From IMG/VR virus record IMGVR_UViG_3300042691_055965, positions 165,189 through 229,188 of that record: a stretch of DNA of 64,000 nt. The stretch is one strand, 5' to 3'. The translations under genes and the position numbers were made by a program. Every line of letters begins with the position of its first letter. Position 1 is the stretch's first letter. Shown in pieces: positions 37,585 to 58,527 of the stretch. The notes below the pieces were generated by a model. The model saw nothing but the letters and a program-made list of their open reading frames with translations. It did not search any database and was not told the origin of the DNA.

Positions 37585-37767
37585 ATGGAAACACTTGAAC
37601 AAATCAAATCTTTAGTTGAAACTTTAGTAGTTGATGCAACTAAATTTTATAATGGAAATAAGTCTGCTGGTGTTAGAGCAAGAAAACTTTCACAAGAATT
37701 GAAATCGGCAGCACAAAAATTAAGAACTGAAATTTTAAACGAAAGTAAAAAAGAAAAGGATGCATAA
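37585..37767 (+). CDS. Hc1 / histone H1-like DNA-binding protein
   Basis: DATKF..GNKSAGVRARK.SQEL..A..LR matches the Hc1 family signature. Confidence 0.75.
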   Translation: METLEQIKSLVETLVVDATKFYNGNKSAGVRARKLSQELKSAAQKLRTEILNESKKEKDA

Positions 37768-41457: not shown

Positions 41458-42828
41458 ATGGCATTAAGATTTACAACCCTTTTGAGGGATTTGATTATCG
41501 AAAATTCAAGATTCGATGTTTTATATGACAAATTTGTAAAACCAAAAAAAGATAGAAAACCGTCAATGACGTTTCAAATTCTTTTTGATATTATATCAGC
41601 GGATCCAACATCAAGAATACCTGAAGGTATGACTTCAGATAATGCAAATCCGCAGGACATGGAAAAGGTAAAAATTGGAAAATATACCCAATGGTTACTT
41701 AAAAACTATGCAACACCAAATATGCAAGTAATCGGAATTGAAGATCCCAATGATCCTGCAGTTAAAAGTGCGATTAAACGATATCAAGATATGTTTATGG
41801 AAGACTTGTACAAAGTTACAGGTGACTTAATGAAATATGAAAAGTTTAAAAATAGATTACCCCAAGAATATAGGGACATTAATAAATTAACACCATCTGA
41901 ACTTTATGATCAAGTAAAAGACTTTAGTTTAGAAAAAACAAAGGCGACTGCTGAAGAGAAAAAAGAAGCGTCTACCACTTATAAACATCCAGGTGCTGAA
42001 ATTGTGTACCGAGGTGGTAATTGGACTGTTGCAAAAATTTCAGATACCGGACAGTTAGGTAAAGATGCTGCTTGTTTTTATGGTGGTTATTATTTGGAAC
42101 CATCAAGAGGGGAAACTAGATGGTGTACGTCTTCACCGGGACTAACATGGTTTGATAGATATATTAAAGACGGACCACTTTACGTTGTTATTCCAAATTC
42201 GCCACAAAAATATACAGGTTCTATGGATACTGGTGAAAAATCAGGGTTACCCGCTTACAGATACCAATTCCATTTTCCATCAAACCAATATATGGATCCT
42301 GCAGATAGACAAATTAATCTTATTGAATTTTTGAACAGTCAAGAAGAAGGATTGAAACAATTCTTTAAACCTGAATTCATGAAAGGTTTAACAACTGCGG
42401 ATGGTAAGAAAATAGCAGTAAACTATCCTGATGACTCCGCATCCAAGTTCATTGCACTTTATGGATTCGAAGAATTTTTCGATAGTTTACCATCAGACAT
42501 TATTAGATTAGAATTTACTAAAAAAGGAAAAGATAGTTTTGAATTACCAATACCTGAAAGTTTAGGAAGATTTCAGCAACTTACATCACTTCATTTAGTT
42601 GGGTGCGTTTCCAAAATACCTGAAAGCATTTGTAACCTTAAAAAGTTACAGTTCCTTTCATTACCTGACAACCCAAATATGGAAATGTTACCATCTTGTT
42701 TGGCGGATTTACCTAATTTGAATTTGGTGAATTTGAGTAGATCGAATCCAGAAAAAACATTACCTGATTCGTTGAAACAAAGACAAGAAACGGATGAAGA
42801 TTTTCACGTATTTCCTCCTACGGCTTAA
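41458..42828 (+). CDS. phage protein with C-terminal leucine-rich repeats
   Basis: IPESLGRFQQLTSLHL / IPESICNLKKLQFLSL / LPSCLADLPNLNLVNL; central TRWCTS..YQFHF domain. Confidence 0.7.
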   Translation: MALRFTTLLRDLIIENSRFDVLYDKFVKPKKDRKPSMTFQILFDIISADPTSRIPEGMTSDNANPQDMEKVKIGKYTQWLLKNYATPNMQVIGIEDPNDPAVKSAIKRYQDMFMEDLYKVTGDLMKYEKFKNRLPQEYRDINKLTPSELYDQVKDFSLEKTKATAEEKKEASTTYKHPGAEIVYRGGNWTVAKISDTGQLGKDAACFYGGYYLEPSRGETRWCTSSPGLTWFDRYIKDGPLYVVIPNSPQKYTGSMDTGEKSGLPAYRYQFHFPSNQYMDPADRQINLIEFLNSQEEGLKQFFKPEFMKGLTTADGKKIAVNYPDDSASKFIALYGFEEFFDSLPSDIIRLEFTKKGKDSFELPIPESLGRFQQLTSLHLVGCVSKIPESICNLKKLQFLSLPDNPNMEMLPSCLADLPNLNLVNLSRSNPEKTLPDSLKQRQETDEDFHVFPPTA

Positions 42829-42886
42829 ATAATTTTTGTATAATTCAAAATATTATTTTATCTTTGTTTAAATTAAAAGTTGTAAA

Positions 42887-43156
42887 ATGAAAAATTTAGA
42901 CATAGACATATACATGAGCAACTTCAAAGGGTTTTTTGAAAGAAACCCCGATCAGTTAAAAAAATTGATAGGAAACGCTAAACCTGAAAAGTTTTTCGAA
43001 GGTATTAGAAATATTGTTGAATCAAATTCCAAAGACGAAGAAAAACCACTTGAACCAACAAAGCAACAAATCATAGAGTTGGTGTTAAAGTTGAATGTCC
43101 CAAAAAAAATCCCAACTTATTTTAATCACCACATGGGTGATATTTGTTTGAACTAA
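42887..43156 (+). CDS. hypothetical protein
   Basis: 89 aa; TATCTTTG promoter at 42859. Confidence 0.6.
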   Translation: MKNLDIDIYMSNFKGFFERNPDQLKKLIGNAKPEKFFEGIRNIVESNSKDEEKPLEPTKQQIIELVLKLNVPKKIPTYFNHHMGDICLN

Positions 43157-48603: not shown

Positions 48604-48795
48604 ATGGGTTTTAATAAAAGATTTTTGAATAAAAAAAGTATAATCAATAATGTTCATGATATTTTAAGTTACCTTAATGTAGATGCTTTTTACATTAACG
48701 ATGACTTTTCCTATGATGTTTATCGATTGTACATTGAAGGTAAATCAGAAGAAGAAATACTAAAATACATTAATGAAAATAAAGATGAAGATTAA
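48604..48795 (+). CDS. hypothetical protein
   Basis: 63 aa after TTGACT-17-TATTTT. Confidence 0.55.
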   Translation: MGFNKRFLNKKSIINNVHDILSYLNVDAFYINDDFSYDVYRLYIEGKSEEEILKYINENKDED

Positions 48796-50002
48796 ACTTG
48801 AATACGTGTGGCTTGACGGGTACACACCAGAACCAAACCTTAGAAGTAAAGTTAAAATAGTTAATCATGGCGATGTTAAAGACGCTATGATTACAGGTAA
48901 ATTTCCTATGTGGAATTTTGACGGGTCGTCCACCAATCAGGCGCAAACAGATAGTTCAGACTGTTTATTAAAACCAGTTCGACATTATATGATTGATACT
49001 TTGTCGACGGTATATGTTTTTTGTGAAGTTTTAAATGCAGATGGTACGCCACATCAATCAAATACACGTTCCAAATTAATTGGTGAAGAAAAAAATATTT
49101 GGTTTGGTTTTGAACAAGAATATTTTATTTTCGATAGAAAGAACAAATGTATTTTGGGGCATGACGAAAATAACTTGGAACCGCAAGGTAAATATTACTG
49201 TGGTGTTGGTGAATATGTTGCTGGTAGAAGTTTTGTAAATGAACACCTACATATGTGTTTGAATTATGGAATCGACATCACAGGAATAAATGCAGAAGTT
49301 GCACTTGGACAATGGGAATATCAAGTGTTTTCAAAAGGAAAATTAAAGGCGGGTGATGACTTATGGATGACTAGATATTTCTTACATAAAATTGCAGAAA
49401 AATACGATTACAAAATTGAGTTACATCCAAAACCTTTACAAAAAGGTGAATGGAATGGTTCAGGACTTCACACCAATTTTTCGACAGAAAAAATGAGGGA
49501 AAAAGGTGGTGAAGAATATTTCAAATCATTATTTTCAAGTTTAGAAACACGACATTGGAAACATATAGAAGATTATGGTTCTTCGAATGATTTAAGACTT
49601 ACTGGAAAATTTGAAACACAATCAATAAACAAATTCAGTTGGGGTATTTCAGATAGGGGTGCATCAATTAGGGTTCCACAAACAACAGCAAATGAATGGA
49701 AGGGATATTTGGAAGACAGACGACCTGCATCAAACGCCGACCCATATAAAATCATATATCAATTATGTGAATCAATCAAAAATGCTGAAGCAATTAATGA
49801 TATAAAACACAAAATGAATTTCAAAGGAAACTTTGATGAAATTATCAATAGATACAACGGTGTGCTTCAAACCGAAGAGTTATTGGAAGAATATCAAAAT
49901 GATGATAATTTTGAAGTGGAAAAAGAAACTATGGTAGAAAATAGAAATAATATATCAACAACAGAAATAGAATTTAATTTAAATGGAAATGACACTAAAT
50001 GA
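48773..50002 (+). CDS. glnII: glutamine synthetase, type II-like (auxiliary metabolic gene)
   Basis: LEYVWLDG, WNFDGSST, GFEQEY, GINAEV..GQWEYQ, HPKP..WNGSGLHTNFS, RLTG..ET, RGASIRVP, YLEDRRP.SN.DPY. Confidence 0.92.
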   Translation: MKIKMKIKLEYVWLDGYTPEPNLRSKVKIVNHGDVKDAMITGKFPMWNFDGSSTNQAQTDSSDCLLKPVRHYMIDTLSTVYVFCEVLNADGTPHQSNTRSKLIGEEKNIWFGFEQEYFIFDRKNKCILGHDENNLEPQGKYYCGVGEYVAGRSFVNEHLHMCLNYGIDITGINAEVALGQWEYQVFSKGKLKAGDDLWMTRYFLHKIAEKYDYKIELHPKPLQKGEWNGSGLHTNFSTEKMREKGGEEYFKSLFSSLETRHWKHIEDYGSSNDLRLTGKFETQSINKFSWGISDRGASIRVPQTTANEWKGYLEDRRPASNADPYKIIYQLCESIKNAEAINDIKHKMNFKGNFDEIINRYNGVLQTEELLEEYQNDDNFEVEKETMVENRNNISTTEIEFNLNGNDTK

Positions 50003-51260: not shown

Positions 51261-53507
51261 ATGAAAATTATAATCACAGAATCGCAATACAGACAAATAA
51301 TTAAAGAATCAGGTATCAGGGATATTAAAAAAATCGCAGAAAGATACCCTAAAGCAAAAATTTACTTCCATCAAGACTTAGATGGTGTAACTACCGCAAT
51401 TGCAATGAAAAACTATCTTGAACAAAACGGCATCAAAGTAGTTGATGCTGAAGTGATTCAATATGGTGATAAAGAGTTTTCAGTTAAAAAACTTGACGCA
51501 GAAGGTGATGTGATGCCAGTGTTAGTTGACTTTGCACACGGCAAACCAATGTTTGTCATTCATACCGATCACCACGATACACAAGCTGGTGTTGAATCAG
51601 GAACTGCAACAAGTTTCAAGGCATCTAGATCGAATGTTGAAACAATATCCCAAACGATATCACCAAAAGATATTTTTCCATCTGATGACTTACTTCTTAT
51701 ATCTACTGTCGATTCTGCCAATTTCCTTGCACATGATATAACTTTTGACATGGTAATGAATTATATTTTCAAAATGGATAAGGATCAATCACTTCAAAGA
51801 AATAAAATGATGATGGGATTGGTGACAAACAAATTGTTACTTGCATTTAAAAACAAACCAAAATTTTTAGAAACATTGGTTATGAAAAGTAACCCATCTT
51901 TGTTAAGTATTTTAAATAATATTAGAGATATAATGAAGGTGGAAGGTTATGCTGAACCTGAAGAACTAGAACAAAACAAACAGAATTATATTGAAAAAAT
52001 GAAAGAATTCCCTAAAGTACAGGGTAAAGTTATTGTACAGTATGGTGGGGGTTCTATGACAAAACCAGGTTCATATGATAGATATACGCCGTTTAAGAAT
52101 AATCCTGATGCTGACTTCTTGGTAATTGCTTGGCCGACAGGAATTGTTCAAGCTTCTTGTAATGCATATAAAGGTGAACGTTCACTTAAAGGTGTTAATC
52201 TTGGTGAAATGAAAGATGAGGTTCTTAAAAAGTTTGAACCGGAATTAAGTAAATTAAAAATAAGTTTTGGTACATTAAAAAGAGTTTCTGAATCAAAGGC
52301 TGGTGAGGGTTCCGTTGGTTTTACTCTCAAAGATTTTTTAGCGATATATGGAAATGCACCATCATTGAAGATTGAAGGAAATAAAGAAGATACATTAAGT
52401 GAAATAAATAAACTTTCAGATAAGTTATATTCCACTTTAACTTTCGAAGAAAAAATGAATTTGGAAAAAGCCAGTGTTAATGGTATGGATGTCGTGAAAG
52501 CAAATTCAGGTGGACATAAATGTATTACAAACATTTCTGGTTTAAGTTATCTTTACACAAACATTAGAAGGTATAAAGATGACGAATTAAAGATGATACA
52601 AAAATATGGTGGATCAAACAATTTTGTTTTGGACATCCAAAGAAAGTTGAAGTCGATGAAAAAAAATCAAGAACTTACTGAAAAGCAAAAAACTGCAGCA
52701 GTAAACCAAATCAAAAAAGAAATAGAATCAGGAAGGTATAACCCAGACATAGACAATAAGGTAACATCATATGTAGATATGATTAAGAAAATTCAACAAG
52801 AGTTTGTAAAAGTACTTGAAAGTTATATAGAAAAAGAATCCATCAACGAAAATGTCGTTGAAAAAAAAAAGTACTATATAGACGATAGTGACATTAAAGG
52901 TGCGGGAAAAGGGGTATTTGCAAAAACAAATATCAAAAAAGGTGAACGTATCGGATTGCTTCACACAATAAAAAAAATGGGTGTCAATTATGATTTTACT
53001 GAATTGGGTAAAATGCATAATCATAGTGGTAAACCCACTTGTCATAATGAAAAAGTTGGAAATAAAAGATACTTAGTCGCATCCAAAGATTTAAAAAAAG
53101 GTGAAGAACTGACAACCAATTACAGATTACAACCAGATTTGGAACAACCAAAAGAAGGTTGGGGTAATTTGAAAGAAGAAAAAGAATTTAAACCACACAT
53201 AGATGGTTACCGTACATATTCACCATTCAAAGATTTGCCATACATAATAGTCAAAGGGAATGGTATTGACTGTGATAATATTGTTCATGACTTGGTTTTA
53301 GTAGGTGACAATAAAAAGGTTAAATACTGTAAAAAAAACACTGGAGTTTATAAAATTACAGGAGCAAGTAAAATTGTAGAATTACCTGTTGATAAAACTG
53401 AAGATGTTGAAGAAATATTTAAAAGTCCTGAAAATGTGGAACTGTGGGTTAAAGAAAAAATTAAATCAGTGGATAAAAAAGGGGAAATTAGAAGAATGAT
53501 GAATTAA
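51261..53507 (+). CDS. leader + DHH-family phosphoesterase + SET domain + unknown C-terminal domain
   Basis: HQDLDG, VD, DHH, GGH; then S.IKGAGKGVFA..IKKGE, NHS, A.KDLKKGEELT.NY. Confidence 0.8.
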   Translation: MKIIITESQYRQIIKESGIRDIKKIAERYPKAKIYFHQDLDGVTTAIAMKNYLEQNGIKVVDAEVIQYGDKEFSVKKLDAEGDVMPVLVDFAHGKPMFVIHTDHHDTQAGVESGTATSFKASRSNVETISQTISPKDIFPSDDLLLISTVDSANFLAHDITFDMVMNYIFKMDKDQSLQRNKMMMGLVTNKLLLAFKNKPKFLETLVMKSNPSLLSILNNIRDIMKVEGYAEPEELEQNKQNYIEKMKEFPKVQGKVIVQYGGGSMTKPGSYDRYTPFKNNPDADFLVIAWPTGIVQASCNAYKGERSLKGVNLGEMKDEVLKKFEPELSKLKISFGTLKRVSESKAGEGSVGFTLKDFLAIYGNAPSLKIEGNKEDTLSEINKLSDKLYSTLTFEEKMNLEKASVNGMDVVKANSGGHKCITNISGLSYLYTNIRRYKDDELKMIQKYGGSNNFVLDIQRKLKSMKKNQELTEKQKTAAVNQIKKEIESGRYNPDIDNKVTSYVDMIKKIQQEFVKVLESYIEKESINENVVEKKKYYIDDSDIKGAGKGVFAKTNIKKGERIGLLHTIKKMGVNYDFTELGKMHNHSGKPTCHNEKVGNKRYLVASKDLKKGEELTTNYRLQPDLEQPKEGWGNLKEEKEFKPHIDGYRTYSPFKDLPYIIVKGNGIDCDNIVHDLVLVGDNKKVKYCKKNTGVYKITGASKIVELPVDKTEDVEEIFKSPENVELWVKEKIKSVDKKGEIRRMMN

Positions 53508-53575: not shown

Positions 53576-53722
53576 ATGACAGAAACAACAAAAGAAGTTG
53601 AAAACGTTATTTACTCTTATGTAAATGACAGAAACGAAAAAGTATACACACCTAACTTGGAATTTGCCCACATTATGGCAAAAAAGTATGGTACTGATGA
53701 TGTCTTCGTCGAAAAAAATTAA
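53576..53722 (+). CDS. small hypothetical protein (48 aa, not in ORF track)
   Basis: MTETTKEVENVIYSYVNDRNEKVYTPNLEFAHIMAKKYGTDDVFVEKN. Confidence 0.5.
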   Translation: MTETTKEVENVIYSYVNDRNEKVYTPNLEFAHIMAKKYGTDDVFVEKN

Positions 53723-53734
53723 AAAAATTTTACA

Positions 53735-53877
53735 AGGTACTTGTCAAATCAAAATAAAAGACTTAACTTTGTAAAAGATTTGAAACTAAAGGTGATGAAA
53801 GATACTCGTTGTCGAATCGAAAAAAAAAGTTCACAAAGTACTTGACAAATAGAAATAAAAGTCGTAACTTTGTAAAA
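53735..53877 (+). promoter_or_regulatory. tandem promoters P1/P2, 101 bp apart
   Basis: TTGTCA-17-TAACTTTG (53741/53764) and TTGACA-17-TAACTTTG (53842/53865); near-identical 42-bp repeats. Confidence 0.8.
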
Positions 53878-53881
53878 CAAA

Positions 53882-53912
53882 TTCGGAAACGTCCGAAATC
53901 GTTCTTTGAAAA
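53882..53912 (+). promoter_or_regulatory. boxB-like hairpin + boxA-like antitermination element
   Basis: ttcgga-aacg-tccgaa followed by GTTCTTTGAAAA, resembling rrn leader boxA. Confidence 0.6.
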
Positions 53913-53914
53913 TT

Positions 53915-54770
53915 GAATTATCCGTTCAGGAGTAAGTAATGAAACTGATAAAGATATTCGGCGGTGTATAGTCGTTAAATAAACCACGAAAGTGGGATAA
54001 AGTGAATCAGAAGTGTAACTGATTTGCGGTTTGGGTAACCGAACTTGAGTACACAAGCGGGATACCGTATAACCTTTAGTACCGAGGGCAACGCTGTAGG
54101 GAAAGTGGTTAGACGATTGGGCGATGTGGGTCGTTCGATTGAGGTGGGAACATCAATAGGAAGAACCCGTAGGAATATTGCAAAAAATAAGATTATCCAA
54201 TTTTATTATTGCGTTTTCCAATATGATAGGATACTTAAAACCGAAAGGTATGATAACAAACAGGTGGTGCTGACATTATCCTTGATAAACTCCTACCAAG
54301 GGGTTAATCACGAAGTAGTCTTGAAATATGGAAATGGGGACATTTCACGGAGTAGTTGAGTATCGATTCGTTCAAAAGATGGGTTGGCTCGGGTGGCGGA
54401 CCACTACTTCGAAAATCCACGACACAATACTTATGATTTAAAAAGTTGAATCAAATTAACTAAGAAAGCTATAAGGAAAAGTGTCCGTCAGGTTTGGATG
54501 AAAGGTGACTACATAGTAATGAGCTGTTCATTGCACACAGAGATCCCAAGTCAATGTGTAATTATCCGAAAAACCTTTAGTCCCGCAAGGACGAACTGGG
54601 GAGGCATCCTCGGAAAGAGTCAAGTAAGATGAGAGTAATTCAAACCTCAAGGAGTGGTTTACCTAAATAACCGTCATTGAGTTTTACTTTCCAAAAGAAA
54701 GTGGATACGAAGGGAAACAATAATACTTCTAAAGAAACTCACAAAAAACTGTAATCTCAGGTTTTTATTT
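53915..54770 (+). ncRNA. large structured ncRNA (about 850 nt; GOLLD/ROOL-class candidate)
   Basis: No credible ORF, GC above background, GNRA-capped and GU-rich stems, own promoters and terminator; ends approximate. Confidence 0.7.
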
Positions 54771-58251: not shown

Positions 58252-58527
58252 ATGAAAAAACATTTACCCTTCAAACAAAAAAATATTGACGAAAAAAAAA
58301 TTAGAACGTTCGATGAAAATATCGATCCGATTGAATTGAAATGGCACAGGGATAAAGAAGATAGAAAAGTTAAAATAATTGAGTCAACAAATTGGAAATT
58401 CCAAATGGATAATGAATTACCAAAATTATTGAAAAAAGGTGATACATTAGTCATTCCAAAAGAAACATTCCATCGTGTAATCAAAGGTGATGGTAATTTG
58501 GTAATTGAGGTTGAATTTATTGATTGA
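58252..58527 (+). CDS. cupin-like protein
   Basis: WHRD..E, GD.LVIPK..FHRVIKG. Confidence 0.6.
   Translation: MKKHLPFKQKNIDEKKIRTFDENIDPIELKWHRDKEDRKVKIIESTNWKFQMDNELPKLLKKGDTLVIPKETFHRVIKGDGNLVIEVEFID

Follow-up and report, generated by a model that had tools for sequence, protein, structure and literature searches.

Among described SET-domain proteins, the nearest functional precedent for the gene analysed here is, by analogy, vSET (PBCV-1 A612L), which PBCV-1 packages and which methylates host H3K27 (PMC7019647). Our gene lies at positions 51261-53507 (+) of a 64,000-nucleotide stretch of DNA, hereafter the window, which is the final 64 kb of the single 229,188-bp contig of IMG/VR virus record IMGVR_UViG_3300042691_055965 (G000). 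Open for 748 amino acids (aa), it encodes a putative divergent DHH/DHHA1 module, a helical linker, a minimal SET domain and a small C-terminal beta domain. Like vSET, this SET domain is virus-encoded and minimal (~100 aa), without pre-SET or post-SET zinc modules, and in the PDB vSET gave both its best fold match and its most complete profile match. Moreover, vSET is packaged in virions, and related copies of the phage domain lie, in crAss-like phages, among what appear to be the genes for virion cargo. There are also clear differences. The sequence identity is ~24%, and the host is a bacterium for the phage SET but, for vSET, a eukaryote that possesses real histones. Unlike vSET, the phage domain is fused behind a DHH/DHHA1-type enzyme, is followed by an extra beta domain and bears a signature of its own, YRLQPDLEQP.

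Prokaryotic SET proteins have been reported to methylate small DNA-binding chromatin proteins, as in the pairs cpnSET/Hc1 and Go1-SET/MC1-alpha; for chlamydial NUE itself, no methylation of Hc1 was found (PMC3980110). G000 has an Hc1-family gene too, but SET and Hc1 show no co-variation here, and the phage Hc1 consists of the N-terminal domain only. As for the first half of the protein, hereafter the N-module, it has in common with the DHH/DHHA1 enzymes NrnA, PggH, GdpP, DhhP, RecJ and archaeal RecJ/Cdc45 the four DHH motifs and a GGH motif, and its predicted fold resembles, at low TM scores, the two-domain enzymes PggH, RecJ and DhhP. It differs from the known members by ~100-aa helical insertions, a length of ~520 aa, a score below the Pfam threshold and a hypervariable cassette slot at its end. 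DHH phosphodiesterases occur in a few jumbo phages, where they are possible counter-defence enzymes (PMC7824862); the jumbo-phage survey does not list SET. A similar theme, that of shuffled effector domains acting early in the host, is found in polyvalent proteins (Iyer et al. 2017, PMC5512222) and in the cargo of PhicrAss001 (PMC10172136). The same SET subtype is placed at the ends of 900-2,400-aa proteins beside crAss ring and muzzle genes. The DHH-SET protein, unlike polyvalent proteins, has only two enzymatic domains, and neither SET nor DHH is among the domains listed in the polyvalent-protein survey (PMC5512222).

An earlier reading of the same DNA, referred to below as the original prediction, had proposed that SET and the phage Hc1 form a writer/substrate pair. 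The best reading of the evidence presented here, to which we assign a probability of about 0.6, is different. The gene would carry a horizontally mobile, probably active lysine-methyltransferase cassette on a conserved, divergent DHH enzyme, and this cassette would likely act on a host protein. The SET cassette and the DHH fusion are not mentioned in the literature searched.

Results

An intact SET domain maintained by selection

The original prediction had placed intact SET motifs in the ORF (open reading frame), within 52863-53140, and this was borne out. All three are present in frame, namely GAGKGVFA at aa 547-554 (nucleotides 52899-52922), NHS at aa 587-589 (53019-53027) and GEELTTNY at aa 614-621 (53100-53123). 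The Pfam model PF00856 (SET) matched aa 535-626 with 36.3 bits (E 7.9e-9), above its curated cut-off of 22.4, and a six-frame search of the genome gave 41.9 bits summed. We delimit the minimal domain as aa 528-640 (52842-53180, +), an interval that encloses the one first proposed. It contains the GxG motif (GAGKG, aa 547-551), NHS followed by KPT, EELTTNY (aa 615-621), whose Tyr621 is the catalytic-type tyrosine, and finally the subtype signature YRLQPDLEQP.

When a profile of 44 relatives was compared with the PDB, it matched the MLL1 SET domain (9e-10) and vSET (3.8e-9), the latter with profile positions 3-86 aligned to vSET residues 5-107. Across these 44 divergent relatives the G, N, H, P, E and Y of the SET motifs (GxG, NH, EEL, Tyr) are invariant; after NHS, most of them have PN where the source copy reads KPT. 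In an AlphaFold2 model of the whole protein (mean predicted local distance difference test score, pLDDT, of 74) the SET region at residues 535-620 reached ~80-90. According to Foldseek, this predicted domain superposes on vSET (3kma) with a template modelling (TM) score of 0.65 over 105 columns and a root-mean-square deviation of 3.9, and it also matches 4rz0, SET8 and MLL, all at probability 1.0. The fold comparison is thus consistent with the SET assignment first made from the motifs. Relative to proteins 75-82% identical to it, the SET domain shows 0.11-0.16 non-synonymous against 0.65-0.77 synonymous changes per site. Non-synonymous change being far below synonymous change, the domain is therefore under purifying selection. 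Altogether, the SET domain is real and kept by selection, far beyond chance.

From the motifs and the model we infer that the domain is probably an active S-adenosylmethionine (SAM)-dependent protein-lysine methyltransferase. One could imagine instead that it is dead, that it has been repurposed for binding or structure, or that it methylates only its own polypeptide or partner phage proteins. Indeed, minimal SET domains devoid of pre-SET and post-SET regions sometimes require partners, and KPT replaces the PN found after NHS in most relatives. However, the invariance of GxG, NH, E and Y across the 44 relatives, the strength of the purifying selection and the predicted match to the fold of vSET, which is active, make such a scenario quite improbable, and a probably active lysine methyltransferase is the reading that we retain.

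Behind the SET domain, aa 645-748 (53193-53504, +) are predicted to form a small beta domain with helices, a distant version of which ends many SET-less relatives too. The beta domain was modelled with a pLDDT of 87.7; its fold had no significant match in the PDB (best E 0.08), and an Atlas search yielded nothing useful.

A divergent DHH/DHHA1 module ahead of SET

Upstream of SET the original prediction had referred to a leader. This region (residues 1 to ~525) corresponds instead to a ~520-aa module of the DHH/DHHA1 type, with more than 3,696 metagenomic homologues and 60-68% identity. The predicted DHH domain (~aa 29-170; 51345-51770, +) contains motif I (H37, D39, D41), motif II (D90), motif III (H101, D103, H104, H105, D106) and motif IV (D151), and these residues are invariant in an alignment of 18 sequences. 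The DHHA1-like half (~aa 255-430; 52023-52550, +) carries an invariant G417-G418-H419 and is included in the Foldseek alignments to two-domain DHH/DHHA1 enzymes, which span 320-470 columns. The pGpG phosphodiesterase PggH, archaeal RecJ/Cdc45, bacterial RecJ and DhhP were matched by the model at probability 0.98-1.0 (targets 7d62, 7bjq, 5x4h, 1ir6 and 9r7o). An NCBIfam search with the N-module gave no match. A helical linker (~aa 440-525; 52578-52835, +), helical in the model, closes the family-wide conserved part, and the BLAST alignments of SET-less relatives end at query residue 523-547.

According to these motifs and the predicted fold, the N-module appears, though not firmly, to be a highly divergent DHH/DHHA1 phosphoesterase that is conserved in the clade and has its metal-binding motifs intact. 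Candidate substrates would be short or cyclic oligonucleotides, or the ends of single-stranded nucleic acids.

A hypervariable C-terminal slot

Past residue ~525 the sequences of the DHH family diverge wholly. Relatives that have no tail measure 517-529 aa. Elsewhere the tail is a small beta domain, SET together with a version of that beta domain, unassigned sequence or, in some relatives, a GNAT acetyltransferase (PF00583, 1.4e-13). A further type has a cysteine-containing motif, either alone or with additional domains, one of which weakly resembles an Ntn-hydrolase acyltransferase.

SET-bearing forms represent 58 of the 3,696 clusters and, among IMG/VR loci numbering 588 or more, ~22. When 62 N-modules, 18 of them SET-bearing, were placed on a maximum-likelihood tree, the distribution of SET required at least nine gains or losses, and constraining the SET-bearing rows to one clade was rejected (approximately unbiased (AU) test, p 1.7e-58). 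Two close relatives illustrate the point. The N-modules of P0015, which has SET, and P0081, which has not, are 96.5% identical, whereas their tails are ~35% alike over 49 residues; nearly identical N-modules with unlike tails indicate that the whole C-terminal region has been swapped by recombination among close relatives. From these sequence comparisons, the C-terminus of the DHH family emerges as a hypervariable slot for different recombined cassettes.

The cysteine motif of the SET-less tails reads W-S-x-K-Y-K-K-S-I-D-C-x-N-P-K-G-F-S-Q-[KR]-A-H-C. It occupies the slot, past residue 520, in many SET-less relatives (P0082, P0089, P0094, P0098, P0103 and others), and the motif matched no Pfam family.

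The SET subtype in other phages

An exhaustive phmmer search with the 113-aa SET piece against 1.84 billion cluster representatives recovered the subtype in 596 representatives at E up to 1e-3, 262 of them at 1e-10 or better. Most are 45-65% identical to it and have the terminal signature in common. The domain either stands alone (proteins of 100-130 aa) or is attached to larger proteins, at residues 2-94 (total length 900-2,400 aa) or at the C-terminus (1,100-2,400 aa). In P0125 and P0160 it is fused behind homologues of two further G000 genes (G000:C1:52104-52838 and window 58267-58506) and forms the C-terminus, so that various proteins of the phage group have received the cassette. Taken together, the sequences argue that this SET subtype moves horizontally among phages.

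Cultured phages gave a different picture. As the original prediction held, SET is rare among them, since only 4 distinct phages matched in 50,697 records. These weak matches were Pelagibacter phage Kolga, cyanophage P-RSM6, Prochlorococcus phage P-SSM7 and one single-cell marine virus, and the genes are called hypothetical wherever the record is annotated. SET is thus rare in phage isolates but not in metagenomes.

Three of the four SET giants that were looked up lie within crAss-like structural modules, in the order Ring_2, a small gene, Ring_1, muzzle (PF25731, 3.5e-34), a ~290-aa (288-aa) gene and the SET giant; CrAss_Ring_1 occurs within a few kilobases of SET in 5 IMG/VR records. In PhicrAss001, cargo proteins and RNA-polymerase-associated giants are encoded behind the muzzle gene; the virion stores them and ejects them into the host (PMC10172136). 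By their position, the SET giants of these environmental crAss-like phages may likewise be proteins of the virion cargo block. Homology to known cargo proteins was considered as a separate possibility and found no support from tblastn, Pfam or PHROG; the non-SET parts of these giants had almost no Pfam or PHROG matches.

Independent distribution of SET and Hc1

The original prediction coupled SET to an Hc1-signature protein at 37585-37767. The ORF (+, 60 aa) does match PF07432 (Hc1), with 68.7 bits (E 3.8e-19, cut-off 23.5), and so belongs to the Hc1 family, but it is not a full HctA equivalent. The HctA equivalog model NF051889 gave 18.6 bits for a cut-off of 100 and aligned over HctA positions 5-58 of 121; the protein has the N-terminal domain only and ends at residue 60 without the Lys/Ala-rich tail of chlamydial HctA. 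The statement that Bacteroidota encode Hc1-like proteins was confirmed with a control genome, that of B. thetaiotaomicron, which matches the Hc1 model.

We searched 45 IMG/VR records encoding the DHH family for Hc1 and SET. Hc1 was found in 19 of them, including all those of at least 46.8 kb apart from G011, and it always precedes the DHH gene by 14-19 kb. SET was present in 13, always within the DHH reading frame. Three large genomes have Hc1 without any SET, namely G013 (292 kb, 99% complete), G014 (291 kb, 97%) and G015 (220 kb). Hc1 is therefore a core gene of this clade of roughly 290-kb phages. G011 (47 kb), which bears SET, was not retained as a case of SET without Hc1, because its contig stops ~1.2 kb before the syntenic Hc1 site.

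In the reverse direction, 21 IMG/VR records carrying the SET subtype were searched for Hc1, which was found only in the 3 that belong to the jumbo clade. SET without Hc1 is seen in the crAss-like genomes G048 (111 kb, terminal repeats, 100% complete), G049 (118 kb, 99%) and G053 (117 kb, 99%), and in eight further crAss-like records estimated to be 38-76% complete (G050-G052, G054-G058). Moreover, Hc1 is alike in SET-bearing and SET-less phages, with the same invariant lysines (K8, K20, K34, K40, K55) and no SET-specific differences. Since Hc1 exists without SET and SET without Hc1, the two genes are independent in their distribution, and the comparative support for a dedicated pair is removed.

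What, then, becomes of the proposal that SET and the phage Hc1 form a dedicated writer/substrate pair by which the DNA of phage or host would be compacted or its expression controlled? The two genes, each of them intact, are separated by 13.5 kb in G000 and share a strand, and the phage Hc1 offers several invariant lysines. The literature also has cpnSET methylating chlamydial Hc1 and an archaeal SET methylating the chromatin protein MC1-alpha (PMC3980110). Against it, Hc1 is a core gene that G013 and G014 keep without SET, SET is limited to a few percent of DHH-family members and has been gained or lost repeatedly, three crAss-like genomes that are 99-100% complete have the same SET subtype and no Hc1, the Hc1 of SET-bearing phages does not differ from that of the rest, and the Lys-rich half of chlamydial Hc1 is absent from the phage protein. 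The pattern across relatives, with SET sporadic and unlinked to Hc1, makes a dedicated pair highly improbable. A complex prediction of SET, SAM and Hc1 returned 0.00 with the tool verdict 'no answer' and was used neither way.

The N-terminal motif and the question of packaging

The first 16 residues of the DHH-SET protein, up to the motif [LI]xE-SG at residues 14-18 (51261-51308, +), might constitute a prohead-protease site or a capsid-targeting leader. Their length varies among relatives, but they always close with [LIV][LI]xE-SG, in which E16, S17 and G18 are invariant or nearly so. The T4 prohead protease cuts after Glu in (L/I)xE. In the 172 plus-strand ORFs of G000, [LI]xE[SG]G occurs 8 times, 4 of them within the first 30 aa, where 0.6 would be expected. 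The four carriers are the gp23 homologue (the major capsid protein, G000:C1:63614-65425), whose N-terminus is conserved in three relatives, two paralogous ~236-aa proteins encoded in tandem outside the window (G000:C1:41466-42176 and 42189-42902), and the DHH-SET protein. The motif might thus be a common prohead-protease site, and the DHH-SET protein might be processed and packaged; this is a post hoc hint from sequence, and two of the four matches are paralogues.

These observations bear on a more specific version of our reading, in which SET would be a vSET-like host shut-off effector acting on host nucleoid proteins (a host Hc1-like 'histone H1' or HU). It would arrive as virion cargo in crAss-like phages and, here, maybe after processing of the leader by the prohead protease. 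Several points speak for it: the cargo-block context of the crAss-like copies (PMC10172136), the precedent of vSET as a packaged viral SET that acts on host chromatin, the Hc1 match in the B. thetaiotaomicron genome, and the N-terminal [LI]xE-SG common to the capsid protein in a genome that has the gp21 protease. Moreover, the predicted or known hosts of the two phage groups are Bacteroidota (PMC12619734; PMC10136315). However, the leader motif was recognized post hoc and its invariant residues may be merely structural, and the DHH-SET gene sits amid genes of DNA metabolism rather than virion genes. We therefore consider this specific version unlikely, and keep the broader reading of a SET cassette that likely acts on some host protein.

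The source phage

G000 (31% G+C; CheckV completeness estimate 76%) encodes homologues of the gp23 major capsid protein (PF07068, 213 bits) and of the gp21 prohead protease (PF03420, 84 bits), together with an SbcC-like nuclease, a DUF3310 protein and a glycosyltransferase. This gene content identifies a tailed phage of the T4 kind, and the two virion homologues uphold the view that the SET domain is phage-encoded. An origin from a eukaryotic giant virus, an idea raised by SET and by a GlnII-type glutamine synthetase, was rejected because of the gp23, gp21, SbcC-like and DUF3310 genes. Although IMG/VR labels the record 'provirus', no host flank was evident in G000, and the G+C content is uniform at 27-35% across the 229 kb.

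The clade comprises large aquatic T4-like phages with genomes of roughly 290 kb, and G000 is probably a phage of the 'moraphage' type that infects Bacteroidota. The moraphage lineage is aquatic, has genomes of 200-307 kb and a T4-like core, and is predicted to infect Flavobacteriia (PMC12619734, Arch Virol 2025). A histone H1-like PF07432 gene is present in all 4 complete moraphage genomes and a glutamine synthetase in 9 genomes (PMC12619734). The likeness to G000, which is one by description, covers the size class, the aquatic origin, the T4-like core with prohead protease and gp23, the PF07432 gene, the glutamine synthetase gene and the glycosyltransferases. The Hc1 gene is accordingly already published for a lineage of the moraphage type (PMC12619734). 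Unlike what we see in G000, SET, DHH and GOLLD are unmentioned in that report. The cellular relatives of Hc1 were also considered as a guide to the host but were not decisive, since the best matches (identity up to ~55%) are spread over Fibrobacterota, Flavobacteriales, Rickettsiales and others.

Elements in the neighbourhood of the gene

Downstream of the DHH-SET gene lies an ORF-poor stretch with a GOLLD RNA (Rfam RF02032) at window 54348-54763 (+), ~840 nucleotides after the stop at 53507. It matched the full model with 313.7 bits (E 5.9e-89), and its 5' part is probably located at ~53900-54347. Of 10 clade relatives examined, 6 show the DHH-GOLLD adjacency (L005, L006, L022, L025, L034, L083); it was not seen in L047, L058, L067 and L069, nor in two distant huge phages with the N-module. 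A functional link between the two was therefore set aside, and we take the adjacency as clade synteny only. Published descriptions of GOLLD mention tRNA (transfer RNA) islands and no DHH gene. No tRNA gene was found in the 229-kb contig, while relatives have tRNA arrays downstream of GOLLD. A tmRNA-like (transfer-messenger RNA-like) gene was called by ARAGORN on the minus strand outside the window (G000:C1:45280-45697; tag peptide EKKQTVSFRVLP) and may be spurious.

Just upstream of GOLLD, window 53720-53880 (+) holds two similar segments of ~55 nucleotides, ~100 nucleotides apart. Each consists of TTG(T/A)CAAAT, 17 nucleotides and TAACTTTG, an arrangement that we take to resemble the -33/-7 promoter form of Bacteroidota. 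The Bacteroidota-type -7 motif (TAnnTTTG) showed no clear enrichment in intergenic regions genome-wide.

On the other side of the gene, a homologue of type II (GlnII-like) glutamine synthetase at window 48773-50002 (+) scored 334 bits with NF041605, short of the 500 bits required for an equivalog. Downstream of it comes a tight run formed by DUF3310, an N6-N4 DNA methyltransferase and DHH-SET, and this order is kept in G011.

Discussion

The domain identities, the integrity of the motifs, the purifying selection, the mobility of the cassette and its independence from Hc1 are shown in this work. To account for them, we propose that the gene product would be an accessory protein combining two enzymes, made by an aquatic jumbo phage of the T4 kind, and that the cassette occupying its slot would be a minimal, vSET-like SET domain. 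During infection, SET would methylate, at one or more lysines, some protein that the host cell contains. The likeliest target would be an abundant host protein, and the purpose would be host takeover or counter-defence. In this scenario SET would not be a dedicated writer for the phage Hc1-like protein.

Several points weigh against this proposal. We infer, rather than observe, the catalytic activity, the host-protein target and the timing. With respect to the N-module, the assignment to DHH stands on motifs and fold only. PF01368 (DHH) scored 21.5 bits, below its cut-off of 28.1, there was no Pfam DHHA1 match, and no sequence-level match was found in the PDB at E up to 0.1. The Foldseek TM scores are low (0.25-0.42 by target), and the model is poor (pLDDT <50) over residues 91-132, which include motif III. 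As to delivery, gene order and protein size are what suggest a cargo role for the crAss-like SET giants, whose non-SET parts gave no tblastn match in 50,697 phage records. The host is a predicted one, and the cellular relatives of Hc1 are at most ~55% identical and come from several phyla. Finally, because Hc1 is universal in the clade, its distribution leaves room for Hc1 as one possible substrate in the phages that have SET.

We speculate further that phages of Bacteroidota-type hosts trade the SET cassette as an injected or early effector that would methylate nucleoid, translation or defence proteins of the host. The vehicles would be virion cargo giants in crAss-like phages and possibly a capsid-targeted DHH enzyme in T4-like jumbo phages. 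Taken as a whole, this scenario of trade and vehicles is tentative and somewhat unlikely. If it were true, it would provide a bacterial counterpart to the 'epigenetic' host shut-off of the vSET type, and an effector class that is undescribed in the literature searched.

Known phage modifiers of host proteins during takeover are ADP-ribosyltransferases, kinases and acetyltransferases, and to our knowledge protein lysine methylation is almost unexplored in conflicts between phages and bacteria. What is added here is a SET subtype that is conserved, mobile and subject to purifying selection. It is present in hundreds of metagenomic phage protein clusters and, in the crAss-like phages, which are abundant and difficult to study, it occurs in the putative cargo gene block. 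The attractive pairing of SET with Hc1 should not be assumed. The domain is well defined (~100 aa), its catalytic residues are clear, and candidate substrates are now at hand. Beyond SET itself, the divergent DHH enzyme with its hypervariable slot appears to be widespread and is a probable hotspot of phage-host adaptation.

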